Positions 636 through 60,645 of a DNA stretch of 64,000 bases are shown one piece after another. The stretch covers positions 248,001-312,000 of the IMG/VR virus record IMGVR_UViG_3300021057_000274. One strand, given 5' to 3'. Both the position numbers and the translations under genes were made by a program. How positions within the stretch are numbered: position 1 is the stretch's first letter; each line of letters starts with the position of its first letter. The notes beneath the pieces were generated by a model. The model did not search any database and was not told the DNA's origin. It saw nothing but the letters and a program-made list of their open reading frames with translations.

Positions 636-958
636 GTGTGCACCGGGCCCTTCATGCAGTGCATGAGCTCATGACCGAGCGTCTCGACGCGACGGTGGTC
701 ATCGAAGCCCTTCGGCTCGAGGATGTAGATTCGGCAGACGTTTGAGGCTGGAGTTTGGAGCGCGCCGCCCTTGGAGCAACCGCGAAGCCCTTGCGCCTGG
801 TGGAGAACGTCGGTCGGACAGTGCTTGCGCAGCTCCTCTTCTGTCTTCACCATCGTCGTGATGACGTACATGCCGCCGCTCTCGCCCTGGGGCGGAGCCT
901 GATCACAGCTCATGAGGAGAGCCAGGGTCGGAAGGAGGAGAAGCTTTCTCATAGCCAA
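632..958 (-). CDS. Putative lipoprotein with HExxH zinc-peptidase motif
   Basis: Signal peptide with LLMSC lipobox; TLGHELMHC near C-terminus. Confidence 0.55.
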   Translation of the reverse strand: MAMRKLLLLPTLALLMSCDQAPPQGESGGMYVITTMVKTEEELRKHCPTDVLHQAQGLRGCSKGGALQTPASNVCRIYILEPKGFDDHRRVETLGHELMHCMKGPVHT

Positions 959-2193
959 CCGTACGTCTCGTAGTTGCCCTCGATGCGCTCGGGGACGATT
1001 GCTCCGCCCTTCATGGTAAGGTGGACCACGAGAGCGGTCGGCGGAAAATCGGTAGTCATCTTGGCATGGAGAAACTTGCCCTTCTCGCCCCCGGTGAGAC
1101 CCTTCTTCGTAGCTTCGGCCTCATACTCGTCATACTTGAGAGAAGCCTTCTTTCGCAGCTCCTTATAAGCTGCGGAGGCGCGATCGGCGTTGTACTCGAT
1201 CTTCGGCACTTCCCACGTGCGGTCGTTCTTGCCAGCGACCTTCTTCTTGAGCTCGTCGACGAAGATGCGAGCGTTGCCGATGTTGTAGACCATCTCGCCT
1301 AGACGAATCTTGTCGAGATAACCTTCTGACATGATCAGCTTGAGGAGCTCCTCGGGGCTATCCCCGCCAGGAGCCTTCGAGGACTTGAACTTGTCGAGGC
1401 GGGTCTTGATGTCTTGCGAAAGCTTGTCAGACCACGCTCTCTGGAGAGATTCAAAGTCTTGATACTTGCCTCCACCGACGCTGATCCTGTTACCCTTGAG
1501 GTTAGAGGTCTTCTTGTTCGACATGTCGGCGCCCTTGCGCCCCTCAGCGCGCTCGTCACGCTTTTGAGCGCGCTTTTTGTCAGCCATGACCGTCATGGAG
1601 CGAACATCTGCGTTCTCCTTGCGGGCAACCGTCAAGATCGCCTTGAAGAGCTTGCGGATCATCGCGACCGCGGTGATCGAGCTGACACCGTCTAGGAGGC
1701 GCTTCATCGTGAAGCCCTGATCCTCGTAGTCACGTCCGAGCTGGCCCGTGAGCTCACGGTACTCTTCCTCGGTAAAGACTCCCTTACCCTTCTCGCCCTT
1801 CTTGAAGAGCTCCGGCTCGGCGATCAGAGAGTAGACCTCAGCGTCACGTTGCTTACCGAACCCCCTGCGACCCTCCTTGATGACGGCGAGCACCTGGTCC
1901 TTGTTGTACTTGACAACGAGAGCGACCGCGCTCGGATTTTCCGTCAGGTTACGAAGCATCTCGTTAGGGTTGCCCTCAACGTTGATGACGACCTCTGAGT
2001 CTTGACCTAGCTCGTCACGAACGGAGGCGACTCGCTTTTCGCTCGAGTACGGAGTCCGCTTGCGGAGCATGCGGAGAAACGTTTTGTTCAGGACGTTGAG
2101 CTTGCCGAGCCCCTCGTAGAGCTCATAGTCGAGATCCTCTAGGGCGTCAAGGTTGCCGTTGATTTGGAGAAGCTCTACGAGAAGTTGGGTCAT
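949..2193 (-). CDS. Basic late protein, putative capsid-packaged cargo
   Basis: Long ORF; probable start ATG 2193 with RBS GAGGA; late promoter TAAATA on minus strand at 2220-2225; leader-like MTQLLVELL. Confidence 0.6.
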   Translation of the reverse strand: MTQLLVELLQINGNLDALEDLDYELYEGLGKLNVLNKTFLRMLRKRTPYSSEKRVASVRDELGQDSEVVINVEGNPNEMLRNLTENPSAVALVVKYNKDQVLAVIKEGRRGFGKQRDAEVYSLIAEPELFKKGEKGKGVFTEEEYRELTGQLGRDYEDQGFTMKRLLDGVSSITAVAMIRKLFKAILTVARKENADVRSMTVMADKKRAQKRDERAEGRKGADMSNKKTSNLKGNRISVGGGKYQDFESLQRAWSDKLSQDIKTRLDKFKSSKAPGGDSPEELLKLIMSEGYLDKIRLGEMVYNIGNARIFVDELKKKVAGKNDRTWEVPKIEYNADRASAAYKELRKKASLKYDEYEAEATKKGLTGGEKGKFLHAKMTTDFPPTALVVHLTMKGGAIVPERIEGNYETYGWL

Positions 2194-2219
2194 GAAAATC
2201 CTCTGCTTGTGGATGACCA

Positions 2220-2265
2220 TATTTATGTTTCACTTCAACAAGCTATTGCTAAAGACCGCTAAATA
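2220..2265. promoter_or_regulatory. Divergent pair of T4-type late promoters (TAAATA core)
   Basis: TATTTA at 2220-2225 (minus) and TAAATA at 2260-2265 (plus) between divergent late genes; resembles T4 gp55 consensus TATAAATA. Confidence 0.7.
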
Positions 2266-2285
2266 ATCTACCAGAGGAACTACAT

Positions 2286-3788
2286 GTGACATCTAGCGCC
2301 GACCTGATCAACGCACTACAGACCGAGGGAGCCCAGGTCTCGTTGAGCTTCACGAGATTGACGCCGACCACCGGAAAGCTGACCTGGACGCTTCCAGAGA
2401 CGCTGAAAGCTTATGACGGAATCTTGATCGTCAGCCACGTCGCTGAGATCAACCCCTCAAACTATCCGACCAACGGAGTCAAGTACACCGCGTCAGCCAA
2501 CTTGCTGACGCCAGCCGACTCGATCGGAAACGCACGCGTGGTCGCCGCGATCTACGGTGACAAGTCAACGAGCTCGGTCGACTTGACGGGGCTAGACTCC
2601 GGATCGGTCTATTACTTCGCTGGCTTCGCGGTCTCCAACGTTCGGTCATATCACCTCCCGGGGATCCGGTCTTACGGAGAGTCGCTCTCGGACGAGATCT
2701 ACGCAGGTGACATGCACAAGAGCTACGGCCCGCCTGCTAACCCGGTGGTCGGCGCGGTCTACTTTGATCGCGATCAGAAGCTCGTCTTCGTTTGGGACGG
2801 CTCAGCCTGGTTGCCGACCTCCGCCCACACCGTGATCACCGGGCAGTTTGACCCGGTGAGTCCGTTCACGGGGCTCCCTGAGGACTACCCGGCGCTGGGG
2901 GATTTTTACTTCAACACTACCCAGCAGATGCTCAAGGTTTGGAACGGCTCGGCGTGGCTTTCTGCTGAGTCGACCCAGGGCTCACCGAACTATGAGAAGC
3001 AAGGGGTAGGGACGACTGGCCGCGGATCAGCTCGAGTCAACATGATCGACATCCTCAAGCACCAGCTGGGTTACCCGAAGGTCTGCGTCGAGCTCACCGA
3101 CAGGCACTTCCAGATCGCGATCGACAACGCCCTCCAAGAGATTCGTCGGCGAACCGACTCGGCGTACAACAAGCAGTACTTCTTCATGAAGATGCACAAG
3201 AACCAGGGCATCTATTACTTGAACGACCCCTCGATCGGTACTGACAAGATCGTTGACGTTCTCAGGATTCACCGGCTCAACATGCTAGGCCTGGTCAACT
3301 TCGCGCCAGACAACATCTACGCGCAGCAGTTTCTCAACCAGTTCTTCGCGCCTGGCGTGCAATATGACCTCGTGTCGATTCACCTGATTCACTCGATGTC
3401 GGAGCTGTTCGGCCAGCTCTTCGCGGGTGAGGTCGCGTACAACTGGCGAGAAGCCTCCCGGCAGCTGTTCGTCCATCGCAACTTCGCGACCGACGAGAAG
3501 GTGATCGTTGAGACCTCCTGCGAGAAGCTCGAGGAGGAGATCCTGGTGGATCGCTGGATGCAGCAGTGGGTGCAGCAGTGGGCCGAGGCCGAGCTCATGA
3601 TGATGCTCTCTCACATCCGAGGCAAGTACGCGACGTTGCCAGGACCGGGAGGTGGCTTGTCGCTGAACGCGGCGGATCTTCGCTCCGAGGGACAGCGTTT
3701 GCAAGAGGATTGCGTGCAGCAGATCGCTGACATGCTAGTGGGTCAGCAGGGCCCTGACGGTTGGTACATTCCCATGGCGATCGGATAA
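2286..3788 (+). CDS. gp13: Neck protein gp13 homolog with N-terminal beta-sandwich and fibre-like repeats
   Basis: C-terminal LGYPKVCVELTDRHFQIAIDNAL and WVQQWAEAELMMMLSHIRGKYATLPGPGGGLSLN are typical of gp13. Confidence 0.8.
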   Translation: MTSSADLINALQTEGAQVSLSFTRLTPTTGKLTWTLPETLKAYDGILIVSHVAEINPSNYPTNGVKYTASANLLTPADSIGNARVVAAIYGDKSTSSVDLTGLDSGSVYYFAGFAVSNVRSYHLPGIRSYGESLSDEIYAGDMHKSYGPPANPVVGAVYFDRDQKLVFVWDGSAWLPTSAHTVITGQFDPVSPFTGLPEDYPALGDFYFNTTQQMLKVWNGSAWLSAESTQGSPNYEKQGVGTTGRGSARVNMIDILKHQLGYPKVCVELTDRHFQIAIDNALQEIRRRTDSAYNKQYFFMKMHKNQGIYYLNDPSIGTDKIVDVLRIHRLNMLGLVNFAPDNIYAQQFLNQFFAPGVQYDLVSIHLIHSMSELFGQLFAGEVAYNWREASRQLFVHRNFATDEKVIVETSCEKLEEEILVDRWMQQWVQQWAEAELMMMLSHIRGKYATLPGPGGGLSLNAADLRSEGQRLQEDCVQQIADMLVGQQGPDGWYIPMAIG

Positions 3789-3789: not shown

Positions 3790-4416
3790 ATGAAGCTACA
3801 AGACATCCTAGAAGCGGCAGATGGCCGCATGCGTTTTAAGTATCGTGGCTTCGAGGTCTCGTTCTCCGAGGACGAGGATAACTTTTGGTGGATCAACTAC
3901 GAGCCGAACCTCCCATCGGAGTTTGACAAAAACAAGGTCTCCCACTGGCAAGACGGTGAGGAGAAGGCCAAGAAGGCGATCGACGCGTTTCTCGACTCGG
4001 GCGGTGACATCTCCAAGCTCAAGAAGACGAAGGTCGTCAAGCTGGGAGAGGGAGAGGACAAGTCAAGACACGAGCTCGAGTTGACCGCTGAAGAAGTGAA
4101 GCGCACGGTTCAGGGAGTCGCCAAGCTAACGATCAACGCGTGCCGGGAGGCTGTCGTCAATGACTACGAGGACGGTGATGAGTACTTCGAGACGGTGCCG
4201 TCGATCAAGCTCTCGTACGACTTTCACTACAAGAAGGGCGGCAAGGAGTATCACGAGGGTGAGATGACGGTCCACGTCTTCAGGCACCCGACCACTGGCT
4301 GGTACATCATCCGCGACGTCTACAGCGGCACGAGAGACATCGAGGTGGAGACCAAGGCCGAAGCTCTCCGAGAGCTCAAGAAGTACGTGTCGTCCTCTAA
4401 GCCGCGAGACCTCTGA
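3790..4416 (+). CDS. Hypothetical, putative capsid-packaged protein
   Basis: N-terminus MKLQDILEA; lies in late operon. Confidence 0.6.
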   Translation: MKLQDILEAADGRMRFKYRGFEVSFSEDEDNFWWINYEPNLPSEFDKNKVSHWQDGEEKAKKAIDAFLDSGGDISKLKKTKVVKLGEGEDKSRHELELTAEEVKRTVQGVAKLTINACREAVVNDYEDGDEYFETVPSIKLSYDFHYKKGGKEYHEGEMTVHVFRHPTTGWYIIRDVYSGTRDIEVETKAEALRELKKYVSSSKPRDL

Positions 4417-5357
4417 TGAAGCTAGACGAGCTATTGCTTGAGGGTGCTGGAGACCAGCCCAAGCTAAACTGGGGGAAGCTCCTTGATCTCATCAAGGACT
4501 GGGTGATCGATTGGATCAAGAAGCACAACGCGAACATTCCGATCACTCTCGGGCCAGACGGTCGGAAGCTCAAGCTCCATGACCTTCTCAAGGACACCGA
4601 TGAAGTTCACCCGTCATTTAGCGATCACGACGTCAATCGCGCTTGGGAGCGAGTCAGTGAGCATGGCCCCGGCCCCTTCTACGACGCGATCGAAAATTGC
4701 GTCGGAGAGCTGGGAGGAAATGTATATGACCACTACGTGAACCTCACGGCTGACGCTGCACGGCGGCTAAGGGTGCCGTATGACGAGATCAGCGAGCACA
4801 CAGTTAAGATCAAGTATCCGAAGCACTACGACATTAAAGAGACAGAGATCAAGCAGATGATCTGGAAGCTCTCGCCAGACATCCACCACTTCTTGAGAAG
4901 GATGGAGGAGGAGATCAAAGTCGAGACCAAGAAGAAGGCGAAGGAGTACGATGCTAAGCTTAAGACCGAGGCCGACGGCGTTTCGGCGGAGGAGCACAAG
5001 CGCTTCGTCGACTTCATCAGAAATAACTTCGACAATGAGATGACAGATTTCATCAAGTGGGTCAATGTGCAGAGGGAAAAGGGCAGGCTCGGTGATCCCA
5101 AGTGGATTAGGTTCTTGGCATGGATGCCGAAGTCCGCGATCGAAAAGCTCTCGAAGCCCGCTGACTTTGCTCCATATTTCAAGAAGGTAGCGGCCAAGAA
5201 GTTGAAGGACGAGCTCCGCAACGCGTTCGTTGAGTCTGCACGCTTTCAAAAGGATGAAAAGCTTCTCGAGTTTATGCTAAACAGGCACCTCTGGAACGCG
5301 GCGTGGCCTGAGATCGAGAGCTTCCTCAAGGGATGGATCGAGAAGAACGGTGGCTGA
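4416..5357 (+). CDS. Hypothetical, putative capsid-packaged protein
   Basis: N-terminus MKLDELLLEG; TGATG coupling to upstream gene. Confidence 0.6.
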   Translation: MKLDELLLEGAGDQPKLNWGKLLDLIKDWVIDWIKKHNANIPITLGPDGRKLKLHDLLKDTDEVHPSFSDHDVNRAWERVSEHGPGPFYDAIENCVGELGGNVYDHYVNLTADAARRLRVPYDEISEHTVKIKYPKHYDIKETEIKQMIWKLSPDIHHFLRRMEEEIKVETKKKAKEYDAKLKTEADGVSAEEHKRFVDFIRNNFDNEMTDFIKWVNVQREKGRLGDPKWIRFLAWMPKSAIEKLSKPADFAPYFKKVAAKKLKDELRNAFVESARFQKDEKLLEFMLNRHLWNAAWPEIESFLKGWIEKNGG

Positions 5358-6921
5358 GAACCCGAAGCTTACCTTCGCCCACGACGGCGCCAGGGGCGGG
5401 AAGTACGTCGTTCCGAAGCAACAGCTCGGAACTCTCGATTACTCGACCTCTGACTGCGCGACCGAGGAGGCGAAGTACCTCGCGGAGCTGATGGCCGAAT
5501 CGCTCAACATTGCGGCTGGACCGGTCAACATCTTTCCGCTCCTCGGCCTCTACAGCCAAGGCTCGACGATCGACCAGGCGGTCAACGGTTTTCCGATCTC
5601 GTCAGGCACTCCGTCAGGGTATGACGCCGCAGCTGCCTTCAACGTCAACGACGACTCGTGGCGGTCGGTTCAGCAAGGCGCCGCGGTCCTGACCGCGCCG
5701 GCCTACATCGGCTACAACTTCGGCACCAAGAAGGTCTGGGACGGCTCTCAGGAGCGCTACGTTCCAGCCGAGCCTGTTCGCAAGAAGATCGGCACGCTCA
5801 AGATTCGCCAGGGCGTCGACTCGCGTAACCGAGCGACCCAGGTGCGCGTCGAGGCGTCGGATAACGGCACGACCTGGCATCGTGTCGACGTCGTCACGCT
5901 CCCCGACTCATCGGCGCTTGAGACCGTTGGCATCCAGGCCGTCGCCGAGTACGCCCAGTGGCGATTCATCCCGACGTTCTTCAACGGCGTCGCCAGCAAC
6001 TTCCAGTGGGAGGTGGTCGAGATGCACCTGCTCGAGGAGACCCAGGTGACGCTCAACGCGATCGAGGACTACATCTTCCTCGAGAACCGCGATCGCTCGT
6101 ACGCCCAGTCATCGACGATGATCAAGTGCTCGTACGACCTGCTTGACGTGCAATCCGAGCTGGCGAAGTTCGGCATCAACCTGCCTCAGACCTACATCTT
6201 CACTTGTGCGTTCTCGACCATGGTCGGCGCGCTCGGCCGGCCGGTCGTCGTCGGTGACATCGTCGAGCTTCCGGGAGAGGTGCAGTACGACGCGAACCTT
6301 CGTCCCGTGCGGAAGTGGCTCGAGGTGACCGACGCAGGCTGGAGCACCGAGGGCTATACCCCTGACTGGAAGCCTCAGCTTTACAGGTTCTACGCGCAGC
6401 CGGTCAACCCGTCAGCCGAGCACCAGGACATCCTCGGCTTGCCGGGCGTCACCAACTCTAACCAGTCTGACGACAGCATCCTCAAGGACGGCTTCCTCTC
6501 TGACGACCTCGGCGTCAAGGTTAGCCAGGCCGTTAGCCAGGCGTCAAAGGAGGCCTCGCCGCAGCTCGGTCAAGACTCCTCAGGGATCGCCAGCGGAAAG
6601 CCCTTGGTCGGCAAGCCAGGTGAGTATGACGGGAATGACCTCTACGCCGAGGACGCGATTCCGCCTGACAACGCGACCTACACGATCGGCGACACCTTGC
6701 CGCTCCCGAGCACGATCTCCGACGGGCACTATCACCGCCAGACCTACGCTCTGGTGCCGCAGCAGATTCGTCCGCCTGACCGACTGCTCCAGTGGAACGC
6801 GACGACTGCTCGCTGGATCGTGAGAGAGACCAACATCAGGTCCGAGCCGACCTCGCACAAGAGGACGATCGCGAAGATGATCGCGTCTGACTCTAAGCAC
6901 TTACCTGACCAGAAGCTGTGA
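5350..6921 (+). CDS. gp14: Neck/head-closure protein gp14 homolog with N-terminal discoidin (F5/8 type C)-like domain
   Basis: IEDYIFLENRDRSY...ELAKFGI...LGRPVVVGDIVELP is gp14-like; YIGYNFG...RVEASDNGTTW...QWRF...WEVVEM is discoidin-like. Confidence 0.7.
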   Translation: MAENPKLTFAHDGARGGKYVVPKQQLGTLDYSTSDCATEEAKYLAELMAESLNIAAGPVNIFPLLGLYSQGSTIDQAVNGFPISSGTPSGYDAAAAFNVNDDSWRSVQQGAAVLTAPAYIGYNFGTKKVWDGSQERYVPAEPVRKKIGTLKIRQGVDSRNRATQVRVEASDNGTTWHRVDVVTLPDSSALETVGIQAVAEYAQWRFIPTFFNGVASNFQWEVVEMHLLEETQVTLNAIEDYIFLENRDRSYAQSSTMIKCSYDLLDVQSELAKFGINLPQTYIFTCAFSTMVGALGRPVVVGDIVELPGEVQYDANLRPVRKWLEVTDAGWSTEGYTPDWKPQLYRFYAQPVNPSAEHQDILGLPGVTNSNQSDDSILKDGFLSDDLGVKVSQAVSQASKEASPQLGQDSSGIASGKPLVGKPGEYDGNDLYAEDAIPPDNATYTIGDTLPLPSTISDGHYHRQTYALVPQQIRPPDRLLQWNATTARWIVRETNIRSEPTSHKRTIAKMIASDSKHLPDQKL

Positions 6922-8183
6922 AGTTAGCCGATCTCCTCCTCGAAAAGAGCAGCTACGTGATCGATAAAAAAGATCTCGTTTTCCTGAGCCACGCTCTCGA
7001 CAAGTACGAGAAGGGAGCGTCTGACGAGTGCTTCTTGAACGCGCTAGTGCAAGCGATCAAAATCGCGACCGACGGACAGGTCAAGCTCTTGATGAGTGAC
7101 CTCGAAGAGATTCTCGCCAATGATCACGGAATAGTTCCGACCTTGCATTACGTAGATGTCAAGAAGAAGCTAAAGAAGAACGTCGTCACGACTCATGACA
7201 TGAACAAGGTTCACCTTGATCTTAAGCTTAAAACTGTCAAGCACCCCTCGGAGGTCATTCCCTTTCTGAAGCAGGGAATTCCGGTGATCATCTCGATCAA
7301 CATTAATGATGCATTTTGGGACAGCTACGGCGCGGTAGTGGGTTGGAGAACTGAATTAATGATCAGGTCAACGCTCTCTAAGTACGGGGACACGCTGCCG
7401 AAGTCATACTACAAGAAGCTCAAGGCTGGCATCATCCCTTACCCGACCGTCGAGATGATGGATAGAGTTACCAAGGCTGGAACAGACATCTTTCACGCGA
7501 TCTTATGCGTCGGGTATGACGCAAAGGACAAAGCGTTCATCTGTCGTGACAATCTCACGAAGGAACATAGGGTCAAGTTCAGCGGGCTCTTTAAGGTCGA
7601 GGAGCAGTTCTTCTGGGACACCGAGCTCAAGAAGCGAAACCTGGCGGTAGTGCGTCACGGGCTGGCGGTCGACGTCGTGGTCAGCCACGCGGAGGGCCCG
7701 TCTGATCGCGTCAAGGAGCGGCTTGAAAATGTTCGCGCGAAATACGATGACGTGTTTCCGCCGTTCTTCATCGAGCTCACTAGACACATGGTGAAACTCT
7801 ATAGGGATGAGGTGAGAGAGAAGCTCGTTAAGGCTGACTGGTCGAACATCAAGGATGAGATTCACAATTATCTGAATGATAACTCCGCTGGAGAGGCCAG
7901 ATACCAGCTCGCCTCAAAGGTCACGAAGCACTTCAACGTCGAAGGCTTTGAAATGGAGGTTCGGAAAAATATCGACCGTCACCTTTACGCGATGCGCGAT
8001 GCTATCGAATTTGCGCGTAAAGAACGGAGCTTTTTCAATCGAATCTTAACAGATATTGACGCGTACTTGGACAAGCTTGACGTTAACGCTCTAGTTCAAC
8101 ACGTACTGGATCGGCCTAAGCCAGAGACTAAGCCAGAATCCAAGCCTAGCAGCGAACCGCAGATCTTTGACAGCTCAACTTAA
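6918..8183 (+). CDS. Papain-like cysteine peptidase domain protein with cargo leader
   Basis: MKLADLLLE leader; candidate catalytic Cys in DECFLNAL, His in FHAILCVGYD, followed by ICRDN. Confidence 0.55.
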   Translation: MKLADLLLEKSSYVIDKKDLVFLSHALDKYEKGASDECFLNALVQAIKIATDGQVKLLMSDLEEILANDHGIVPTLHYVDVKKKLKKNVVTTHDMNKVHLDLKLKTVKHPSEVIPFLKQGIPVIISININDAFWDSYGAVVGWRTELMIRSTLSKYGDTLPKSYYKKLKAGIIPYPTVEMMDRVTKAGTDIFHAILCVGYDAKDKAFICRDNLTKEHRVKFSGLFKVEEQFFWDTELKKRNLAVVRHGLAVDVVVSHAEGPSDRVKERLENVRAKYDDVFPPFFIELTRHMVKLYRDEVREKLVKADWSNIKDEIHNYLNDNSAGEARYQLASKVTKHFNVEGFEMEVRKNIDRHLYAMRDAIEFARKERSFFNRILTDIDAYLDKLDVNALVQHVLDRPKPETKPESKPSSEPQIFDSST

Positions 8184-8203: not shown

Positions 8204-9103
8204 ATGGATAAAATCCAATCACGATTCCAGCTCTTCCTGAATGAAGGCGTGATCAAGCTCCCTCAGAAGCTGTTGAAGGACGCGACAGACCACTTCAATT
8301 ACTGGGCGCTGGCTCACGTCTTGCACCACGGGCTCAAGAAAGCTGGGAGAGATCGCGACGAGCAGCAATTTGTCCTCGCAGCGATCAAGAAGGCTGCCTT
8401 CGACGCCGGGGTCAAGATGCCGACCTCGACCGACATCGGGAAGGCAGGTCGGAACTCGACGCTCGTTCGTCGCTTCCAGCTGGGTGATCTGCCGGCGTCT
8501 TACCTCAAGAGCCTCACCCGCGTGAGCGGCGCGGAGGAGAGGGACGTCAAGCGACTCTTCGGCAGCATCGACATCAAGTTTAAGATCTTCTTCGTCCCCC
8601 ACTCTAAGACGAGAATCGGTCCGTACTGGTCGGCTGACGACCAAGAGATCGGAGTCTCGACCGTCCACGCGCACCTCTCCTCCAAGGACTTTAAGAACTT
8701 CTCGGATTACTCGCCTGCGACGATCTCGAAGCGGATGCACGTAGCTCTAGGGGACATCGAGCACGAGCTCACCCACGGAATCCAAGAGCTTGTGCTTCAA
8801 TTTCTGCACAAGGAGCAGAGCGACCCTAAGGGAGACTCCGCGCTTCACGGCAAGGGCGAGACCGAGTACTACTTGCTAGCTACCGAGTTCGACCCGTGGA
8901 TCAAGACCTCGGTGCGCCGCTTTAGAACGGTGGTGCAACACCACAAGGCGGAGCGCAACCTCACCAAGCAGAAGGAGCTCTTTCAGAGCTACTCTCAAGG
9001 TGACGGTAGCGACTTCTTCGCCGTTCTCAAGAAGCACGATCCGGAGCGCTGGAAGAAGGCGGTGCGGATCGCGTGGTCTAGCTACGAGGACAAGTACCTC
9101 TAA
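8204..9103 (+). CDS. Zincin-like metallopeptidase-motif protein with cargo leader
   Basis: IEHELTHGIQ (HExxH) followed by EYYLLATEFDPW; leader FQLFLNE|G. Confidence 0.5.
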   Translation: MDKIQSRFQLFLNEGVIKLPQKLLKDATDHFNYWALAHVLHHGLKKAGRDRDEQQFVLAAIKKAAFDAGVKMPTSTDIGKAGRNSTLVRRFQLGDLPASYLKSLTRVSGAEERDVKRLFGSIDIKFKIFFVPHSKTRIGPYWSADDQEIGVSTVHAHLSSKDFKNFSDYSPATISKRMHVALGDIEHELTHGIQELVLQFLHKEQSDPKGDSALHGKGETEYYLLATEFDPWIKTSVRRFRTVVQHHKAERNLTKQKELFQSYSQGDGSDFFAVLKKHDPERWKKAVRIAWSSYEDKYL

Positions 9104-10555: not shown

Positions 10556-10936
10556 ATGGACCTCCTTCGGGAGCTTACCCAGATCCTCGAGGGTCTTGAG
10601 GATCATAAAAAGTATCCGCTCGTTGATCGGGTCAACGCCGACCTGGTCAACGAGTTTATGCACAAGAAGCCTGCCCGCTGGGCTGACCTTGACAGCTCTG
10701 CCAAGAAGATTCCGCTTGAGCGAGTCAAGGCGATCTTCGGCGGAGATCTTCGCCGTCGCTCCTTTACGATCAAGAGCCTCTGGGGTGAGCGCCCCGAGAG
10801 CCCCTCCTCAGAATTTGTCGACTCTTTTAGAAATTACAAGGAGCCGATCGTGGTCGTAGATGACAAAAAGCACCCCAAGTACGTGATTCACTCCGGTGGC
10901 TTCAATTATCCGCGCTACATGACGGCCGTCAAGTGA
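10556..10936 (+). CDS. Hypothetical, putative capsid-packaged protein
   Basis: Leader MDLLRELTQILEG; RBS GGAGG. Confidence 0.6.
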   Translation: MDLLRELTQILEGLEDHKKYPLVDRVNADLVNEFMHKKPARWADLDSSAKKIPLERVKAIFGGDLRRRSFTIKSLWGERPESPSSEFVDSFRNYKEPIVVVDDKKHPKYVIHSGGFNYPRYMTAVK

Positions 10937-11886
10937 AACTTCTTGAAGAGCTCGTCCTCCTCCTAGAAGAGATCAGCGATCCCTACGTGGTTACGCTGGG
11001 GCGCCCTAAGAACTGGCGCCCGTTCAAGGATACGCCAGCAGGGGCGAACCTCGATGAAGATCCGCACACTTACTTGATGATCAAGACCAAGCAAACCGCT
11101 GGCATTCCCATGGCGGTGATCCGCGATCTGGGACTTAGTTACACAGACGGTGACGGCAAGATCCGGGGGAAGGCGCGCACTCTAGGGGTCGTGAAGGTGT
11201 CAACTCTAGAGGGCAAGGAAGCTGGCAAAAAGAGCCGGTCTGTCGGGTTCTACAGTTGGAAGCCTACCGGATTAGTTTTCTGGTTCAAGAATAAGTCTGA
11301 GAGCGAAGCTAAGGAAGCCATCGAGCAGCTGTTAGAGCCGGTGCTTAAGCGACAGAATAAGTACGTGGCCGCTCGAGAGAGGGCGAGAGAGACCGCGCCA
11401 CGGCGTCGAAAGGAAGCGGCAAAATATTATTCAGAGCGGCGCAAGAAGGAGCTTGAAGAGCTCAAGCAGAAATACGGAGCCGACATCGTGGAGCGAGTAA
11501 AGGTCAAGTCGATGTCCCACGAGGGTGATGACGGGTACCAATGGGCGATGTTCGTCGACGGCCGTCGAGTTCGATCAGGGATGAAGCAAGCCGAAGCTAG
11601 AGCCGCGCAACGCTCACAGTGGAGCTATCTGAAGCGGCTAAAGGAAATGACCCCCGAGGAGCGACTTAGGGAAATCAACGCCGCCCGCGGCCTGCAAGCT
11701 TACTTCATGCTTCAGGCTATGGAGGACGACGTTGATTTGCATCTCGCCGTGATCAAGCAGCACGCGAAAGAGCTAGTTGACGCGAACGACTTAGCCACTG
11801 ATACGATCGAGAACGCAAAGGTTAATGACGAACAGGCGAGGAAGATCTATAACGACCTCATCGCTAAGCTTAGGAAGAAGACATGA
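10933..11886 (+). CDS. Hypothetical basic protein, putative capsid-packaged
   Basis: Leader MKLLEELVLLLEE. Confidence 0.6.
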   Translation: MKLLEELVLLLEEISDPYVVTLGRPKNWRPFKDTPAGANLDEDPHTYLMIKTKQTAGIPMAVIRDLGLSYTDGDGKIRGKARTLGVVKVSTLEGKEAGKKSRSVGFYSWKPTGLVFWFKNKSESEAKEAIEQLLEPVLKRQNKYVAARERARETAPRRRKEAAKYYSERRKKELEELKQKYGADIVERVKVKSMSHEGDDGYQWAMFVDGRRVRSGMKQAEARAAQRSQWSYLKRLKEMTPEERLREINAARGLQAYFMLQAMEDDVDLHLAVIKQHAKELVDANDLATDTIENAKVNDEQARKIYNDLIAKLRKKT

Positions 11887-12224
11887 TCATCGTAGAACTG
11901 CTCGCCATCCTCGAGGCTAAGATCGATCCGAAGAAGTGGCCTGAGCTCAAGGCCTACTGGGACAAGTACGGCCACGGCACCAAGTTCGAAGACCTCGACG
12001 GTATCAAGGTACGAAGTGACGGCAACTACGTCGTCGTGCGCTGGAAGGAGGAGGGCGGCAAGGTAGGACTCGCCGACCTAGCGAAGTACACCGGAGGTCC
12101 GTGGGAGATGCAGAACGACAGCTTCGACGAGATCACCGAGGGTGACTGGCGGAAGCTGAAGATCGTTCCAGACTGCGACTGGTTCACGATTCCCGGCCAC
12201 CCCGACTACGACGAGGAAGAGTAA
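11883..12224 (+). CDS. Hypothetical, putative capsid-packaged protein
   Basis: Leader MIIVELLAILEA. Confidence 0.6.
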   Translation: MIIVELLAILEAKIDPKKWPELKAYWDKYGHGTKFEDLDGIKVRSDGNYVVVRWKEEGGKVGLADLAKYTGGPWEMQNDSFDEITEGDWRKLKIVPDCDWFTIPGHPDYDEEE

Positions 12225-12305: not shown

Positions 12306-13328
12306 ATGGCGTTGGAACTTCTACTAGAATTGCTGGATTCGACCAGCGAGAAGTCTCCTGAGATTCAGGAGATGGCGCCATTCATCCACGCCATCGCGAG
12401 ACTCTTGTTCGGTACTAAGGCTCGCGCCGTCAAGGACTCTAAGCGCGGCAAGGAAGCCAAGTTCTTCGGGGTCGCTCACGAGCGAAGCCGGATCAAGGAC
12501 CCGAAGGGAAAGCCGCTGATGCTCACCTTCGATAACAGCACCGACTCCGGCGAGTTCGAGATCAACTCGCTACTCAAGCTCGATATCGAAAAGGACGGCG
12601 ACATCGACCTGGAGATCAAGAAGCTCTTCAAGGAGTTTCAGGTCAAGTCCAAGAAGAAGATGAACTACGTCATGCAGGGCGACCGCTACGTTCTGCGCGA
12701 GATCCACCTGGGCAAAGAGATCAACGAGCTCACCGTCGCGATGGTCGAGAAGCTCCTCAAGTTGCTCAGCAACAAACCCGAGAAGGTCGAGGAAGCCATG
12801 ACCTCTGGCGAAATTGTTGAGTTTATCAAGAAAGAGACAAGAGAAACTCAAAACTCAGATCATCCGGCTGGCGATCGCGCTTACGCAAGGGCGATCGACG
12901 ATGTCATCAAGAAGGCTAGCAAAGCTGATTTAAAGTTTGCGCAAGAACAGCTAAATGCTGCGATTAAAGAGGGCAGCTTCGGAACCGACACCCTCACCCC
13001 AGCTGCTGCAGGTAAAGTTTGGGGTAAGTTTGCTGGATGGCGCGCTGCCGTAAAGTTTCTCGGAGGTAAGCTTCCCAAGGACGTAGAAAGCGCATCGTAC
13101 CTCGACGATCTTTGGGACATCAAGCCGGGAAGGGTCGAGGAAGCGATGACGAAGAGCTTCATCACAGAGGCTGACTTCAACTTGATTCTTGACTGGTTCT
13201 CGTCGACGTCTGGCGGCCCGCAGATGGCTGACTACGCGGACAAGATCAAAGAGCGGATGCCAGGCGTGCAGCCTTGGACCTGGAAGCAAAATAAGCACTC
13301 TCTCATCAAGAAGCTCTCCAAGAAATAA
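12306..13328 (+). CDS. Modular putative capsid cargo with repeated KPxxVEEAMT linkers
   Basis: Leader MALELLLELL; VEEAMT occurs twice. Confidence 0.6.
   Translation: MALELLLELLDSTSEKSPEIQEMAPFIHAIARLLFGTKARAVKDSKRGKEAKFFGVAHERSRIKDPKGKPLMLTFDNSTDSGEFEINSLLKLDIEKDGDIDLEIKKLFKEFQVKSKKKMNYVMQGDRYVLREIHLGKEINELTVAMVEKLLKLLSNKPEKVEEAMTSGEIVEFIKKETRETQNSDHPAGDRAYARAIDDVIKKASKADLKFAQEQLNAAIKEGSFGTDTLTPAAAGKVWGKFAGWRAAVKFLGGKLPKDVESASYLDDLWDIKPGRVEEAMTKSFITEADFNLILDWFSSTSGGPQMADYADKIKERMPGVQPWTWKQNKHSLIKKLSKK
12785..13150 (+). repeat. 18-bp near-perfect direct repeat flanking a 348-nt in-frame cassette
   Basis: GGTCGAGGAAGCCATGAC at 12785-12802 and GGTCGAGGAAGCGATGAC at 13133-13150. Confidence 0.8.
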
Positions 13329-14551: not shown

Positions 14552-14583
14552 CCTTCTAGATCTCGAAGCCGTTAAATATTCTA

Positions 14584-45354: not shown

Positions 45355-46172
45355 ATCCCCTGGTCGAACTTGGTGACGTAGACGCCCCTCGCTTCGGCTA
45401 GGATCTTCTCAAAGATCCTAGCTCCGCTCTCTGCGAGCTTATCTAAGCCTCGTTGAAGGACCTCGTTCTTCGCCTTGGCGAACTCGACCTTGTCCTTGAA
45501 CATGTATTGAGTGAAGAGCTCCGTGGTCAGCTCCTCTTGTTGCACGTCGATCAAGTGCTGCTTCGACTTCGTGATCACGAAGTTCTTGATGAACCAATCC
45601 ATGGGCGTAGAGTCCTCGCTAGGTTCGTCACCCCAGCGGCTTGAAGCCCAATCGTCGATCTCTTGCTCGTACTTCTCTAGCTCCTTGGCCATCTGTGACG
45701 TCGAGAGCGTGATGGTGTGGAGGAAGTCGTGCACGAATCCCCAACCCGAGTAGTGAGTGATGTCCTCGTACCCCCTCTTTGGTCCGTGATCCTCGAAGAC
45801 GTAGACGTTGATCGCGTTAGAGTGATAGGGCAGGAGCGCTTTGACACGCTCTGAAGAAGAGTTGATGAGATGTGCGATCGCAACGGCTAGATACTCGAAG
45901 TCAACCTTAAGGTAGAAGAAGTCGTTAGTCGCGTCGCGAATCCGCTCTGGGTTGTGTTGCTTAGCGTCTTTCCAGATCTCGTTGTAGGTAACGCCGCGCA
46001 CGAGGTTGTAGTAGATCGGCGTCTTGACCTTTCCGAGCACTCGCTTAGCGACCTTTAAGACCGACTCATCTGTCATCTTGCCGATCTTGGATTTCGCGTA
46101 GCGCGGCGCCCTGAGTTGAACGTGGTTGACGTCCTCTAGAGGCGCCTCTGTGAGGAGCTCAGAGATCTTCAC
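45351..46172 (-). CDS. Cargo-leader protein with HxxxH motif, paralog of 17988..18575
   Basis: MKISELLTE|APLEDV; WGFVHDFLH. Confidence 0.6.
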   Translation of the reverse strand: MKISELLTEAPLEDVNHVQLRAPRYAKSKIGKMTDESVLKVAKRVLGKVKTPIYYNLVRGVTYNEIWKDAKQHNPERIRDATNDFFYLKVDFEYLAVAIAHLINSSSERVKALLPYHSNAINVYVFEDHGPKRGYEDITHYSGWGFVHDFLHTITLSTSQMAKELEKYEQEIDDWASSRWGDEPSEDSTPMDWFIKNFVITKSKQHLIDVQQEELTTELFTQYMFKDKVEFAKAKNEVLQRGLDKLAESGARIFEKILAEARGVYVTKFDQGI

Positions 46173-46368
46173 GAGCGGGGTGCTTGGGCTTGCGACGAAA
46201 CTGGGTCTGATCGCGAAAAGATCGGCCGCTAGGGATCGGCGGGCGGCGAGAGCCTGGCGTGCGCTTGCAGTTCGACGAGTGCTTCTCCGTCGTCGTCTTG
46301 CAATCGGGGCAAGGTTGGATTCTCAATTTCCCGCTCATGATCTCGATCAGCTCTCTCAGCAATTCCAT
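46159..46368 (-). CDS. Small basic zinc-binding protein with cargo-like leader
   Basis: MELLRELIE; CPDC...H..NC; RBS AGGAG; late promoter 46386-46391 (-). Confidence 0.55.
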   Translation of the reverse strand: MELLRELIEIMSGKLRIQPCPDCKTTTEKHSSNCKRTPGSRRPPIPSGRSFRDQTQFRRKPKHPAREDL

Positions 46369-50252: not shown

Positions 50253-50597
50253 ATGAAGTTAAACGAGCTCCAGCGAAAATTCTATCACGTGACGTTCGCC
50301 CAGAACGTGTCAAGCATCTTACGGCATGGGTTGGGTGGCAAGAGAGCTACCCAGCGCTGGAGCTTCTCGAATGGAAGGGTTTGTCTAGCCGATTCGATTG
50401 AGAAGGCTAAGAGATATGCGAACTCGGTCGGACAGCCAGATGAGTGGGATGGAAAGTTCGTTGTTATAGAGGTCGAGATTCCAGATGAGTCGAAACTCAG
50501 CCAAGACTCGAACATCGACGGCAAGACCGCCGATGGATACTTTGAGTATGACGGCGTGATTCCTCCCTCACATCTCAAGGTGCACGACACTTACTAG
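50253..50597 (+). CDS. ADP-ribosyltransferase/KptA-fold protein with cargo leader
   Basis: FYHVT...SILRHGL...VCLADS...VIEVEI...IPPSHL; leader MKLNEL. Confidence 0.65.
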   Translation: MKLNELQRKFYHVTFAQNVSSILRHGLGGKRATQRWSFSNGRVCLADSIEKAKRYANSVGQPDEWDGKFVVIEVEIPDESKLSQDSNIDGKTADGYFEYDGVIPPSHLKVHDTY

Positions 50598-50626: not shown

Positions 50627-51025
50627 ATGAAGATCTCCGAGCTCTACGAGTCAAGGTGGATTGAGAGCCCCAGGCTTGACGTCTCTACTGAGGGTAACTC
50701 CAAGCGAGTCTTCTTCACCGCTAAGCTGAAGAAGGACCACCGTCGTGATTGGGACAAGGACGAGGTAGCTGTCGAGGCGACCGTTGACCTTGACAAGCCA
50801 GTCGCTCGCATCAACCAGATCAACGCGTGGATGTCACACCGTAGCCTCGGGCAAGAGCTTCTCTCGCACATCCTCTTTCACCTCAAGAAGAACGGCTATA
50901 AGAAGGTGACCGCTTACACCGAGCGGTTCAACTTCAATCCGCAATCCATGGTCAAGCGGCTCGGAGCTGTTGAGACAGGGAAGACCGAGCACGGCGTGAC
51001 CTGGGAGTGGGACCTTGAGGCTTGA
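50627..51025 (+). CDS. GNAT-like protein with cargo leader
   Basis: MKISELYE|S; INQINAW...RSLGQELLSHI; TAAATA at 50615-50620. Confidence 0.55.
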   Translation: MKISELYESRWIESPRLDVSTEGNSKRVFFTAKLKKDHRRDWDKDEVAVEATVDLDKPVARINQINAWMSHRSLGQELLSHILFHLKKNGYKKVTAYTERFNFNPQSMVKRLGAVETGKTEHGVTWEWDLEA

Positions 51026-52001
51026 TGAGATCTCGCAGCGCGCCAGCAGCTGGGAGGATCTGCCGTTCAGAGCTGCTACCGGTGAGGGGCCCTCTCTAGA
51101 GGACGTCGTTCCTGAGCGCGCCCCGAACGGCGATTTCATCTTCTACCACGGTACGTCTCTCACAACCGCCGAGAAGATCGTCAAGGACAAGATGATCATG
51201 CGAGACGACCTCGGTTACTCAGGGATAGGTACTACCCGCGGAGCCGTTAGCGTCTACGGCATCATGAAAGCTTCTAAGGAAAATCTCCGTCGCAGACTCA
51301 AGATGGTGCCAGGGATGATGCATGACGACCCAAAGGCTGAAAAGAGCGCGGTTCTTCGAGTGCGCATCTCCCGAGATTGGTTCAAGGCCCATCCAGATTC
51401 GGTCTCTAGAGAGACCGGAGGCTCTGGAAAGAACCAGTTCTTGATTCGCCCGCCGCGCGGAGAAAAGGGTGTGCCGCTAGAGCACGCTGAGATCGTACGG
51501 GCAGCTGGAGAGGAGCTGCGCGAGACGGTCAAGAGCCAGGACGTCGGAGTCTTCGTCACTTCTGCCTTCGAGAACGCGGGGATCAAGAACGTCAAGATCG
51601 TCGGGTCGCTGATGCGAAAGGGCAAGGGAAACGACATCGACGTCAAGGTCGACGCACCAGGGAGATTTGAGGCCGTCGAGTCAAGGGCCTTCAGCGTCGC
51701 TCACAAGCTGTCCAAGATGATCGGCGAGTACTCGAGAGGAAAGCATGATCGCGTCGACGTCTTCTTGAAGATGCAACCAGAGTGGGTCAATGACCGCGCG
51801 ACCGCTAAGCTGATCATCAGGCGGTACCTGGATGACCATGACGAAAACTTCCCGAACTACGGCGGATCTGACGGGATCTATCATGAGCCTGAGGTCGTGG
51901 ACATCAACAAGGTCAAGTACTTGATCATCTCCGTCGGCGGAGGGTGGATGATCCAACGTGGATATTGGCTCCATGAACCTGAAGATACGGTCAAGGGGTA
52001 A
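51015..52001 (+). CDS. ART-like domain fused to Pol-beta-type nucleotidyltransferase domain
   Basis: FYHGTS...AVLRVRI N-terminal module; IVGSLMRKGKGNDIDVKV and RVDVF C-terminal module. Confidence 0.6.
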   Translation: MRLDEISQRASSWEDLPFRAATGEGPSLEDVVPERAPNGDFIFYHGTSLTTAEKIVKDKMIMRDDLGYSGIGTTRGAVSVYGIMKASKENLRRRLKMVPGMMHDDPKAEKSAVLRVRISRDWFKAHPDSVSRETGGSGKNQFLIRPPRGEKGVPLEHAEIVRAAGEELRETVKSQDVGVFVTSAFENAGIKNVKIVGSLMRKGKGNDIDVKVDAPGRFEAVESRAFSVAHKLSKMIGEYSRGKHDRVDVFLKMQPEWVNDRATAKLIIRRYLDDHDENFPNYGGSDGIYHEPEVVDINKVKYLIISVGGGWMIQRGYWLHEPEDTVKG

Positions 52002-52843: not shown

Positions 52844-53191
52844 CTAAGATTTTATCGCGTAGTTGATCTCGTGGTACGCGCGCTCAAGATTTTCAAGCGC
52901 TTCTGCGATCGTGTTATGGGTGTCGATGAGATAGCCCTTATAGTTGGACGGGGCATGATCGCCGTGCGCGATGCCGTTAGGCTTCTTGGGGAAGTCGGCT
53001 TCATGCCTCAGGCGATTCGCGATCTCACGATGCTTAGCAGCCTCCGTGAGAAGAGCCTTTTGATCACAGATCGTGGCGAGGGCTTTCGCGAGCCTGTCGT
53101 ACTCTTTGAAGCCCTCCATGTCACGTCCCTTTTTAGGTTTCGAGGGAATTCCCTTGGGCCAGGCTTCAACGAGAAAAGCTTTAAGTTTCAT
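52844..53191 (-). CDS. Putative capsid-packaged internal protein
   Basis: MKLKAFLVE|A; RBS AAGGA; minus-strand TAAATA at 53209-53214. Confidence 0.65.
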   Translation of the reverse strand: MKLKAFLVEAWPKGIPSKPKKGRDMEGFKEYDRLAKALATICDQKALLTEAAKHREIANRLRHEADFPKKPNGIAHGDHAPSNYKGYLIDTHNTIAEALENLERAYHEINYAIKS

Positions 53192-59068: not shown

Positions 59069-59072
59069 GATG

Positions 59073-59101: not shown

Positions 59102-59137
59102 AATCGGGCATGAATAACATTCCAAAAAGAAAAAAGA

Positions 59138-59728
59138 TTGATCCAAAAAGAAGAACAAGCTAACGATTGGTTTAGCTCCGACCCGCACTACCACCACTCT
59201 AAGATCATCCAGTATTGCAACAGACCGTACGCCTCCAAGCAGGAGATGAACGAAGCGCTGATCGCCAACTGGAACGCGGTTGTCAAGCCTCAGGATAACG
59301 CTTATTGCCTGGGCGACTTTGTCTTCGGTGACGAGCGAGACGCGATCAAGATCGTCAATCGGCTTAACGGTAACAAGCGTTGGATCCGAGGGAATCATGA
59401 CAGCAAGCTGTGGCGAAGCAAGGAGCTGCGCTCGCTCTTCTCGTGGACCGGTGACTACCTCGAGCTGAAGATCGCTGACCCCGACGCCGATCGCGGAATC
59501 CAGATGATCTGCTTGTTCCACTACCCGATGATCGTGTGGAACAAGTCACACCGCGGCTCGTGGCACCTGCATGGCCACTGCCACAACAAGCTCAAGTACC
59601 CGTTCGAGGCTCGCATCCTCGACGTCGGTGTCGACGGTCACGGATATCGCCCGATCTCATATCAGGAGGTCAAGGCGATCATGAGAAAGAAGAAGTTCAC
59701 CGCGGTAGACCATCACGTAGAGCTCTGA
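59138..59728 (+). CDS. Calcineurin-like metallophosphoesterase
   Basis: FSSDPHYHH, CLGDF, IRGNHD, LFHYP, HLHGHCH, DVGVD. Confidence 0.9.
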   Translation: MIQKEEQANDWFSSDPHYHHSKIIQYCNRPYASKQEMNEALIANWNAVVKPQDNAYCLGDFVFGDERDAIKIVNRLNGNKRWIRGNHDSKLWRSKELRSLFSWTGDYLELKIADPDADRGIQMICLFHYPMIVWNKSHRGSWHLHGHCHNKLKYPFEARILDVGVDGHGYRPISYQEVKAIMRKKKFTAVDHHVEL

Positions 59729-59743
59729 GATGTAAATAGGCTC

Positions 59744-60310
59744 ATGGATCTCCTCCGTGAACTTATCAACGTTTCAGAAGCTACAGAGAAAGAGCTGATC
59801 GACCAGTTTGAGGACTGGGACGACAAGCAGCTCAAGCAAGCCGCTGAGATGGGCAACGAGGAGGCCGGGCGTGAGCTGTCTCGACGCGCAAAGTTCGGCA
59901 CTAGAAACTACGACAAGCCGGGTCAAAAGCCCTTCATGGAGGCGACGATCGACGCCTTCAAGCAGATGACCGAGATTAAGTTTGATCCAGATCGCACCGA
60001 TCCGGCCGACATCTTCATCGAGATGCGCAAGATCATCGCTCAGGTGGCATATACCTTCCTGGTACACGAGAAACAGCAACACGACAAGCGCCAAGCGCAT
60101 GATGAGGACGAGGACAAGACCGAGTTCAACTTCTCGTTCGACGCGCTCGCCGACGAATGCCAAGACGTGTGGCGTCAAGTCAAGACCTTCGCGGATGACA
60201 GAATGAACAGCCACAGTGACTGGCTCGAGTACATCCATGACGGCACCTTCCTAGATCTTCCGAAGGATCCTCCGCTGTCAGGTTTTGCTGGAAAAAAGAA
60301 GTCCAAGTGA
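59744..60310 (+). CDS. Putative capsid-packaged protein, leaderless late gene
   Basis: MDLLRELINVSE|A; TAAATA at 59733-59738. Confidence 0.6.
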   Translation: MDLLRELINVSEATEKELIDQFEDWDDKQLKQAAEMGNEEAGRELSRRAKFGTRNYDKPGQKPFMEATIDAFKQMTEIKFDPDRTDPADIFIEMRKIIAQVAYTFLVHEKQQHDKRQAHDEDEDKTEFNFSFDALADECQDVWRQVKTFADDRMNSHSDWLEYIHDGTFLDLPKDPPLSGFAGKKKSK

Positions 60311-60645
60311 AGCTCAAGACGTTTCTAGCTGAGGGGAAGGGCAAGCTCACCGAGAGGGACGTCGGCCGAGACGCTGAGGTGATCTTCCGCATCACCACGA
60401 ACGCCGTGAAGTTCGACGACGACATCTATGGCTTCGGCTACTTTGGTAAGATCATCGAGGTCACTGACAAGCACGTAGTGTTCGAGGCGGAGCGCGCTGG
60501 TCAGTATACGGCTTACACCGCTCCTGGAAACGGCGTCGAGCTCAAGGGCAGTCACAAGATCAAGATCACGATGGATCTAGATAAGGCGAGTCGCGTTGAC
60601 GCGCATCCAGACGATGACTTCATCGCAATTCACTTTGCTGCTTAA
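60307..60645 (+). CDS. Putative capsid-packaged protein
   Basis: MKLKTFLAE|G, very like the T4 internal-protein leader MKTYQEFIAE. Confidence 0.6.
   Translation: MKLKTFLAEGKGKLTERDVGRDAEVIFRITTNAVKFDDDIYGFGYFGKIIEVTDKHVVFEAERAGQYTAYTAPGNGVELKGSHKIKITMDLDKASRVDAHPDDDFIAIHFAA

Follow-up and report, generated by a model that had tools for sequence, protein, structure and literature searches.

What is a short N-terminal sequence doing in front of proteins that are otherwise unrelated? The question is raised by a 64,000-nucleotide stretch of DNA (hereafter the window), which corresponds to positions 248,001 to 312,000 of the IMG/VR virus record IMGVR_UViG_3300021057_000274 (389,331 bp) and was located on ENA contig k141_1025171 (395,674 bp), derived from the same phage. 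The source is an uncultivated jumbo phage of ~390 kb from a soil metagenome, with a GC content of ~57% in the window; its sequencing runs comprise soil metagenomes and one metatranscriptome with 5% of the sampled words. A preliminary description of the window had proposed that about 21 unrelated late proteins share a leader resembling the capsid targeting sequence (CTS) of phage T4 and represent an arsenal of enzymes injected into the host. The reading favoured here, with a probability of roughly 0.6, is that these leaders belong to a T4-type capsid-targeting or propeptide system that has undergone great expansion and now extends over the late operons of a jumbo phage. On this basis we infer packaging, cleavage, docking and head retention of the tagged proteins, as well as their injection and a role of the cargo in the host.

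At the DNA level, megablast and blastn of the window against a phage collection returned no match. By protein, the closest cultured relative is Ralstonia phage RsoM2USA (60% identity for NrdA and 46% for a neck protein), followed by Xanthomonas phage XacN1 (33%), and phages of the RsoM2USA/XacN1 type have been described as distant members of the T4 superfamily (PMC5852040). The literature searched contained no description of such a leader system for this phage group; the papers on PA5oct and phAPEC6 make no mention of N-terminal processing, and the jumbo-phage survey by Aravind makes no mention of the leader.

The N-terminal leader and its distribution

All 21 N-termini listed in the preliminary description were read exactly as given. 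Each unrelated cargo protein would carry a short amphipathic propeptide of the form M-(K/R/D)-h-x-(E/D)-h-h-x-E (h, hydrophobic), usually followed by Ala or Gly; in the sequences below, an arrow marks the predicted cleavage site. The first start codon of the open reading frame (ORF) is used in 19 of the 21 leader genes. At the two exceptions, 2193(-) and 53191(-), the chosen ATG is separated from the upstream start by a TAAATA box, which makes the previously proposed starts the more likely ones. A metagenome gene caller agreed with the start at 53191 and preferred 2220 to 2193 and 3829 to 3790. BLASTP of all 21 proteins against each other detected no mutual similarity, so that their unrelatedness is borne out.

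The enrichment of the motif was assessed in a rough set of 94 genes for the window. The pattern [KR][LI]x[ED][LIF] occupies residues 2-6 of 8 of the 94 N-termini, a count that 17,760 internal windows would put at 0.07, and [KR][LIF]xx[LF]LxE occurs at five N-termini and in none of the internal windows. A further pattern was built from the T4 leaders only, in order to escape circularity (M, 1-2 residues, h-x-x-h-h-(x)-E); it matches 9 of the 94 N-termini where 0.93 would be expected (Poisson 6e-7), an approximately ten-fold excess. In ~15 of the 21 proteins the leader is full, with h-h-(x)-E as its end within 14 residues, a leave-one-out position-specific scoring matrix (PSSM) gives p<0.01 for 11 of them, and the residue following the Glu is Ala, Gly or Ser in 9 of 16 cases (background 19%, p=0.001). 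The proposal of a leader common to about 21 proteins is partly upheld: the strong enrichment and the full forms speak for it, the six weak short forms and the PSSM support for only 11 proteins against it. An expectation-maximisation (EM) two-component mixture fitted to the N-termini was overfitted, assigning 54 of 94 to the motif class, and was kept as a global statistic only (log-likelihood ratio 214 versus 140 +/- 9 in decoys).

Leu in the leaders is encoded by all six codons and Glu by both, no common upstream sequence precedes the genes, and the leader is kept in relatives with 41-42% GC. As judged from these codons and flanks, conservation is at the level of the protein rather than the DNA, with selection acting on the protein. 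A signal in the DNA itself, for example a recombination cassette or a translation enhancer, was rejected on account of the synonymous codon diversity and the absence of a shared upstream sequence. A more general objection is that the motif has no targeting function at all and reflects a preference for A/T-rich, helix-forming coding starts in a GC-rich genome, combined with selection by eye. In the 21 leader genes, the first ten codons do indeed end in A/T far more often than codons of the gene bodies (GAA 35% versus 14%, AAA 33% versus 8%), and half of the list scores poorly in the leave-one-out PSSM. This codon bias reflects the relaxed mRNA structure that is usual near starts and constitutes a minor confounder for an N-terminal motif in a GC-rich genome. 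Nevertheless, an absence of function is very improbable, given that core genes of the same phage start with MS, MT or MA and lack the pattern, that the pattern is bound to a specific position and has A/G after its final E, that it persists in the relatives of lower GC content and in orthologues whose adjacent linker varies, and that the unbiased T4-derived pattern retains its ten-fold enrichment.

Propeptides of T4 and the head module of the window phage

All internal head proteins of T4 join the core via the CTS, which is later removed by gp21 (PMC5694885). The published CTS reads MKTYQEFIAE (PMC8442874), and it is the one conserved part of the otherwise diverse internal proteins found in T-even phages (PMC3012670). 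N-termini read from the T4 genome (NC_000866) are MKTYQEFIAE↓A for ipII and ipIII, MKTFKEFTS...ITE↓A for ipI, MAKINELLRE↓S for gp24, MELITELFDE↓D for Alt and MLKEQLIAE↓A for gp22. Several window leaders come close to these: KISELLTE of the gene at 46172 agrees in 6 of 8 positions with KINELLRE of the gp24 propeptide, MELLRELIE↓I at 46368 resembles the Alt leader, and the leaders at 60307 and 53191 resemble those of the internal proteins (IP), to which MKTFKQFLSE of RsoM2USA is nearly identical (ipI/ipIII). T4 gp21 cuts after L/I-x-E. No sequence homology to Alt or gp24 was found.

The window system and the T4 internal proteins are alike in having a leader of ~10-19 residues of the form M-K-x-h-x-x-h-h-x-E followed by Ala, a diverse cargo in which only the leader is conserved, variable loci and a gp21-type protease in the genome. 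They differ in scale, since at least 15-25 tagged genes occur here in 82 kb, against three in T4, and are dispersed over operons for the neck, tail, terminase and head. K-L-x-E-L-L-x-E takes the place of K-T-Y-Q-E-F-I-A-E as the prevailing dialect, many of the cargo proteins are of large size (200-420 aa) and show no particular basicity, and cleavage and packaging are predictions drawn from the genes. Giant phages of the phiKZ type (SPN3US and 201phi2-1) also possess many non-essential head-internal proteins, which a gp21-related protease processes after Glu, and their propeptides are thought to be prohead-targeting (PMC5694885). In these phages, the propeptides are mostly longer than 100 residues and the proteins form paralogue families, whereas the window proteins have leaders of 8-14 residues without paralogy; the long propeptides and paralogous families that distinguish phiKZ-like ejection or inner-body proteins are thus not found among them.

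The protease, scaffold and capsid genes of the phage lie 7-11 kb upstream of the window, within an 18-kb region of the same contig (L028) in which the gene order is portal, S77 protease, 135-aa ORF, 168-aa protein, 217-aa protein, scaffold and major capsid protein. The prohead protease (L028:6740-7363, ~11 kb upstream of the window) belongs to the gp21-type Peptidase_S77 family (Pfam 6e-29) and is followed by the 135-aa ORF (L028:7367-7774). The 168-aa protein has the N-terminus MTMTATKVSFKDLLE↓G and the 217-aa protein MELLLELLALRE↓A, the latter being one of two leader genes within the module (the other reads ...KVSFKDLLE↓G). The scaffold protein (L028:9049-9966) shows a weak T4_CASP match and a conserved N-terminus, and the major capsid protein has a conserved YLTE↓TAA site (h-x-E↓TAA). 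On the strength of these matches, the genome combines a gp21-family protease with a gp22-like scaffold, as the T4 system does. The N-terminus of the scaffold is itself leader-like in the window phage (MDEILKKLLE↓S), in RsoM2USA (MDEILQKLLSSELL) and in T4 gp22, so that the leader may mimic the N-terminal helix of the scaffold.

Ten abundant virion bands of RsoM2USA have been identified by mass spectrometry (PMC8504454). Two of the ten proteins carry the leader, namely ORF89 (MKTFKQFLSE↓S) and ORF132 (MKTFKQFLNTLME↓A), and the ORF numbers agree with the GenBank tags. The likeness to the T4 CTS asserted in the preliminary description is consequently supported by close N-terminal matches, by an S77 protease in the same phage and by these two bands. 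In the proposed mechanism, the cargo genes would be transcribed late, either starting at TAAATA promoters or as read-through of the operons for neck, tail and terminase, and the leader would dock each protein on the gp22-like scaffolding core during prohead formation. The gp21-type S77 prohead protease of the phage would then cut after the Glu, and the mature proteins would remain in the head and exit with the DNA. The injection of cargo together with the DNA is suggested by analogy with T4.

Gene slots, portability and cargo

The behaviour of the leader in relatives points to a portable element. The neck-gene slot of RsoM2USA contains ORF403 (MTFKAFLQE↓T), ORF404 (MTTFKEYLTE↓M) and ORF405 (MKLEDLFE↓T), and its terminase-side slot contains ORF258 (MRLKQFLME↓A), ORF256 (MKFSDYILE↓S), ORF255 (MNQTFKQFLTE↓T) and ORF254 (MTTFKEYLLE↓G); the same syntenic slots are filled in relatives by non-homologous, leader-tagged genes, and a relative with 42% GC (L012) has the same layout. 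Pfam and PHROGs searches with ten RsoM2USA leader proteins gave no match. Across 79 related contigs, the T4-derived pattern occurs in 30 of 934 N-termini near capsid genes (8.3 expected), as in MKTFKRFLTE↓A. The leader is kept in orthologues while the adjacent linker varies. Orthologues of the gene at 8204 in L011 and L012 retain ...YLNE↓GLIKLP. Homologues of the gene at 6918 start with MKFKEFLME↓K, MKFKSYLTE↓A or MKLWELLLE↓K, so that the two leader dialects are interchangeable on one protein.

Cargo domains also occur with other N-termini or none. One homologue of the ADP-ribosyltransferase (ART)-fold domain encoded at 50253, in another contig of 362 kb, starts at the domain and leaves no room for an extension, and a second has a different extension (MTLEEIF...). 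A protein of the head module (L028:8265-8918) has 627 relatives, and its domain, which starts at DNPGG and contains NEGNHRI, is also found internally in giant proteins, as long as 5,812 aa, with LPD38 or ART-PolyVal domains. Stand-alone copies of this domain (180-190 aa) each have a leader of their own (MRVIELLAE↓R, MKLFELLKE↓D, MTSFKIFLHE↓E and MRLSEICLTE↓D), and one of them adjoins a head-core gene and the terminase gene. Polyvalent proteins of phages and conjugative elements are the subject of work by Iyer, Aravind and co-workers that is cited in PMC7824862. They share the DNPGG...NEGNHRI domain with the head-module leader gene, and both systems would deliver effector domains along with the DNA, but many domains are fused in one giant protein there, whereas single domains each bear a short leader here. 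The earlier notion of a modular plug-in leader is supported in this respect, since orthologues swap dialects, the ART domain also occurs without the leader and the DNPGG domain resides inside polyvalent proteins. As far as the sequences indicate, the leader is a portable module attached to unrelated cargo in variable loci.

Among the cargo proteins, the 421-aa product of 6918..8183 (+) starts with MKLADLLLE↓K, followed by a papain-fold cysteine peptidase and a helical C-terminal half. Its Pfam C39_2 match is sub-threshold, Cys38 and His193 are conserved, and the core of its AF2 model matches xylellain, C39-like peptidases and cathepsin S, with residues 1-33 disordered; structural modelling confirms the papain-like peptidase fold. 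Modelling likewise confirms an ART fold for the 114-aa product of 50253..50597 (+), in which the domain begins at FYHVTF after a short-form extension (MKLNE↓LQRK); the Pfam PARP match is sub-threshold, the AF2 pLDDT is 75, and the model matches Tpt1/KptA, pertussis toxin S1, DarT and Arr. T4 Alt is an ADP-ribosyltransferase that is packed in the head and injected. The window protein resembles Alt in joining an ART fold to an N-terminal extension, but it has only 114 aa, is Tpt1/KptA-like and bears the short MKLNEL form alone.

Confidence is lower for the 235-aa product of 16094..16801 (+), which has a short leader only (MRLNE↓LVG) and appears kinase-like from its match to PHROG 15752 (T7 gp0.7-type protein kinase, E 6e-7), and for the 299-aa product of 8204..9103 (+), which has a 14-residue leader (MDKIQSRFQLFLNE↓G) and is putatively zincin-like because of a HELTH motif at 187. 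The PHROG matches of the latter include 'virion structural protein', and it weakly matches a structural protein of XbC2. The 328-aa product of 51015..52001 (+), with a TTG start and a short leader (MRLDE↓ISQ), is a lead for a nucleotidyltransferase (NTase) and nothing firmer, through Atlas feature matches to NTP_transf_2 (score 0.90) and no Pfam match. PDB sequence searches, including that with 16094..16801, gave no match. No GNAT protein was found and no ParB assignment was confirmed among the 21 leader proteins; a ParB-like motif is present only in a head-module leader gene outside the window, where Pfam gives no confirmation. The domain list of the preliminary description therefore survives for the cysteine peptidase and the ART fold, less securely for the kinase, zincin-like and NTase modules, and not for GNAT or, within the window, ParB.

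Most of the remaining cargo proteins have no Pfam or PHROGs match and are ORFans, and Atlas searches were uninformative for 4416-5357 and 16798-17991. The term 'enzyme arsenal' accordingly suits a minority of the cargo, the majority lacking an enzyme signature. This composition bears on the possibility that the leader is a genuine prohead signal, but that most of its bearers are accessories of the core and scaffold or are associated with the shell, and are degraded or retained in the capsid like T4 gp67, gp68 and gp24, rather than being injected effectors. The T4 shell protein gp24 and the degraded core proteins gp67 and gp68 have the same kind of N-terminus (PMC5694885), the N-terminus of the scaffold resembles the leader, and the ORFans show no sign of enzymatic activity. 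Such a role for most of the proteins is nonetheless unlikely, because several of them contain folded, enzyme-like domains (papain-like, ART fold and kinase-like), one leader protein consists of a domain typical of injected polyvalent proteins, and hypervariability between relatives suits host-interaction genes better than assembly parts.

This hypervariability is evident in tblastn searches against RsoM2USA, in which none of the 21 leader genes and 23 of the 73 other window genes find a match (Fisher 0.001). RsoM2USA-matched conserved genes (neck, structural and terminase) frame the leader genes. At the left end of the window, 949..2193 (-) encodes a 414-aa ORFan with a weak short leader (MTQLLVE↓LLQ) and no Pfam or PHROG match; the TAAATA box at 2220-2225 overlaps its upstream ATG and favours the start at 2193. 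The first cargo slot is framed by a gp13-like neck gene without a leader at 2286..3788 (+) (PF26809 Phage_T4_gp13; 41% identity to RsoM2USA ORF401). Directly 3' of it, 3790..4416 (+) encodes a 208-aa ORFan with a full leader (MKLQDILE↓A, PSSM p=0.001), although its start is uncertain in view of the caller's choice, and 4416..5357 (+) encodes a 313-aa ORFan with one of the strongest leaders (MKLDELLLE↓G). A conserved neck-module gene without a leader (5350..6921 (+), 46% identity to ORF402) separates these from the peptidase and zincin-like genes.

Beyond a gp15-like gene (9122-9883) and a structural protein gene (9943-10539), both RsoM2USA-matched, there follow four ORFans: one of 126 aa at 10556..10936 (+) with a full 12-residue leader (MDLLRELTQILE↓G, PSSM p=0.0003), one of 317 aa at 10933..11886 (+) with a full leader (MKLLEELVLLLE↓E), an acidic one of 113 aa at 11883..12224 (+) with a full leader of an offset type (MIIVELLAILE↓A), and one of 340 aa at 12306..13328 (+) that starts with MALELLLE↓LLD and has TAAATA upstream at 12254. 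Homologues of RsoM2USA ORF261, 260 and 259 occupy 13328-16107. After the kinase-like gene, 16798..17991 (+) encodes a 397-aa ORFan with a full 11-residue leader (MKFAAFLQLNE↓G), 17988..18575 (+) a 195-aa ORFan with a full leader (MKLSSLLE↓A) and 18575..19489 (+) a 304-aa protein with a short leader (MNLLE↓ILN; phrog_16075), which stands directly upstream of the large terminase gene. The T4-type terminase gene (19479..21023 (+), Pfam Terminase_6N 2.7e-15, homologue of RsoM2USA ORF253) closes this slot at 16094-19489. In the same region, an ORF at 15212-15547 has a Tn7 TnsA-like N-terminal endonuclease domain (Pfam), lies between conserved structural genes and may be a mobile or homing element. 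The genes at 9943-10539, 13328-14551 and 43514-44149 are distant paralogues in the RsoM2USA ORF356 virion structural protein family, two of them preceded by TAAATA.

The leader genes in the second half of the window are more dispersed. On the minus strand, 45351..46172 encodes a 273-aa ORFan (MKISELLTE↓A) for which a homologue search retrieved nothing but itself, 46159..46368 a 69-aa basic protein with CxxC and the Alt-like leader (TAAATA upstream at 46386-46391), and 52844..53191 a 115-aa basic ORFan with a full leader (MKLKAFLVE↓A; TAAATA upstream at 53209-53214). On the plus strand are found a 132-aa ORFan with a short leader at 50627..51025 (MKISE↓LYE↓S; TAAATA upstream at 50615), a 188-aa acidic ORFan at 59744..60310 (MDLLRELINVSE↓A; TAAATA upstream at 59733) and a 112-aa ORFan at 60307..60645 with a full leader of the T4 IP type (MKLKTFLAE↓G). 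Other genes in this part include a C5 cytosine DNA methylase gene (44146-45354, 7.5e-15) and, at 53405-56055, a MoxR-like AAA ATPase gene (AAA_3, sub-threshold) followed by a gene for a DUF2201_N putative metallopeptidase, which resemble a conserved pair in the window phage. A Thg1-type tRNA-His guanylyltransferase gene is located at 58107-58868 (4.9e-26); despite its presence, ARAGORN detected no tRNA gene in the window.

TAAATA occurs 21 times in the window against 3.5 expected, a six-fold excess, with sites including 2260, 9111, 9904, 12254, 14573, 21021, 43490, 46386-, 50615, 53209- and 59733. Nearly all copies lie just upstream of a same-strand gene, and known structural genes as well as six leader genes are directly preceded by one; TAAATA is probably the core of a T4-like late promoter of this phage. 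In the replication-type block at 21-45 kb, none of the 42 genes has a leader (Fisher 5e-7). Late expression of the leader genes is likely, because TAAATA precedes both structural and leader genes and the 21-45 kb block contains no leaders. Just past the end of the window, a leader-type gene for a 145-aa protein (VKITELLSE↓S; L102:12091-12528, window coordinates 64200-64637) stands among genes of replication type (dCMP deaminase and clamp loader), which indicates that leaders are not confined to structural clusters.

The placement of the genes could also mean that the motif addresses proteins elsewhere than the capsid interior, such as the neck and tail assembly line, a membrane or a chaperone, or that it tags them for degradation or regulation. 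In 13 of 21 cases, the leader genes alternate with genes for the neck, tail completion and terminase and not with head genes, and the short MKLxE[LI] form recurs on ~45 RsoM2USA paralogues. Another destination is still rather unlikely, and a little more so than an accessory role in the prohead. The leaders are amphipathic, contain 1-3 acidic residues and no hydrophobic run, and hence do not resemble signal peptides of the Sec, Tat or lipoprotein kind; the window does contain true signal-like N-termini (309-635, 632-958 and 56655-56822), and these look unlike the leaders. Moreover, the closest known matches of the leaders are T4 prohead propeptides, they occur on genes inside the head module, and they end in the L/I-x-E site typical of gp21-type proteases.

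Weight of the evidence and implications

Several observations weigh against an expanded T4-type targeting system. By analogy with T4, the leader predicts entry into the prohead and not injection; a leader alone does not mean that a protein is injected, because a gp24-type propeptide also marks a shell protein. Six of the 21 proteins (2193, 16094, 18575, 50253, 50627 and 51015) have only the short MKLxE[LI] start and no second h-h-x-E site, and at several leader sites K, E, L or I comes next instead of a small residue. The virion support from RsoM2USA amounts to two gel bands out of ten, and the leader was found on none of three virion-packed proteins of XacN1 in which it was sought, namely a chitinase, a lipase and an M23 peptidase (virion proteins: PMC5852040). 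Some leader-like genes follow nrdAB, and one upstream of the window that carries the short form encodes a phosphoribosyltransferase; their products are not obvious head proteins. Finally, nearly all of the ~45 tandem RsoM2USA paralogues (~200 aa; L004:25363-32072, L004:39177-50000 and L005:1-11225, about 175-211 kb in the record) start with MKLxEI or MRLxEI, and a conserved Trp frequently follows at about residue 15; the one copy tested had no match in Pfam. The short form may be a degenerate leader or something else, the latter because ~45 paralogues are more than is plausible as head cargo.

A T4-type targeting system nevertheless remains the preferred explanation of the leaders, and a broader proposal can be attached to it more tentatively, at somewhat less than even odds. 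In phages of the RsoM2USA/XacN1 branch, the CTS may have turned into a general loading system for dozens of single-domain effectors per genome, the genes of which are swapped in fixed late-operon slots. Such a system would be the unbundled counterpart of giant polyvalent proteins and would use two interchangeable dialects (gp24-type K-I-x-E-L-L-x-E and IP-type K-T-F-K-Q-F-L-x-E) that resemble the N-terminus of the scaffold. The effectors conceivably belonging to it so far, with a similarly guarded degree of belief, are the papain-like peptidase, the ART fold, the kinase-like and NTase-like proteins and the polyvalent-protein domains.

Should the leaders function as they do in T4, a short tag would predict the head-delivered proteins of uncultivated jumbo phages from sequence alone. 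Head-delivered proteins would be the first phage proteins to meet host defences, and the tagged set would then catalogue candidates for anti-defence and takeover factors, which are ORFans for the most part. New leader variants would also become available for loading foreign proteins into phage capsids, as has already been done with the T4 CTS. For the phages themselves, two delivery strategies would be linked: single domains that each carry a tag and domains that are fused into polyvalent proteins.

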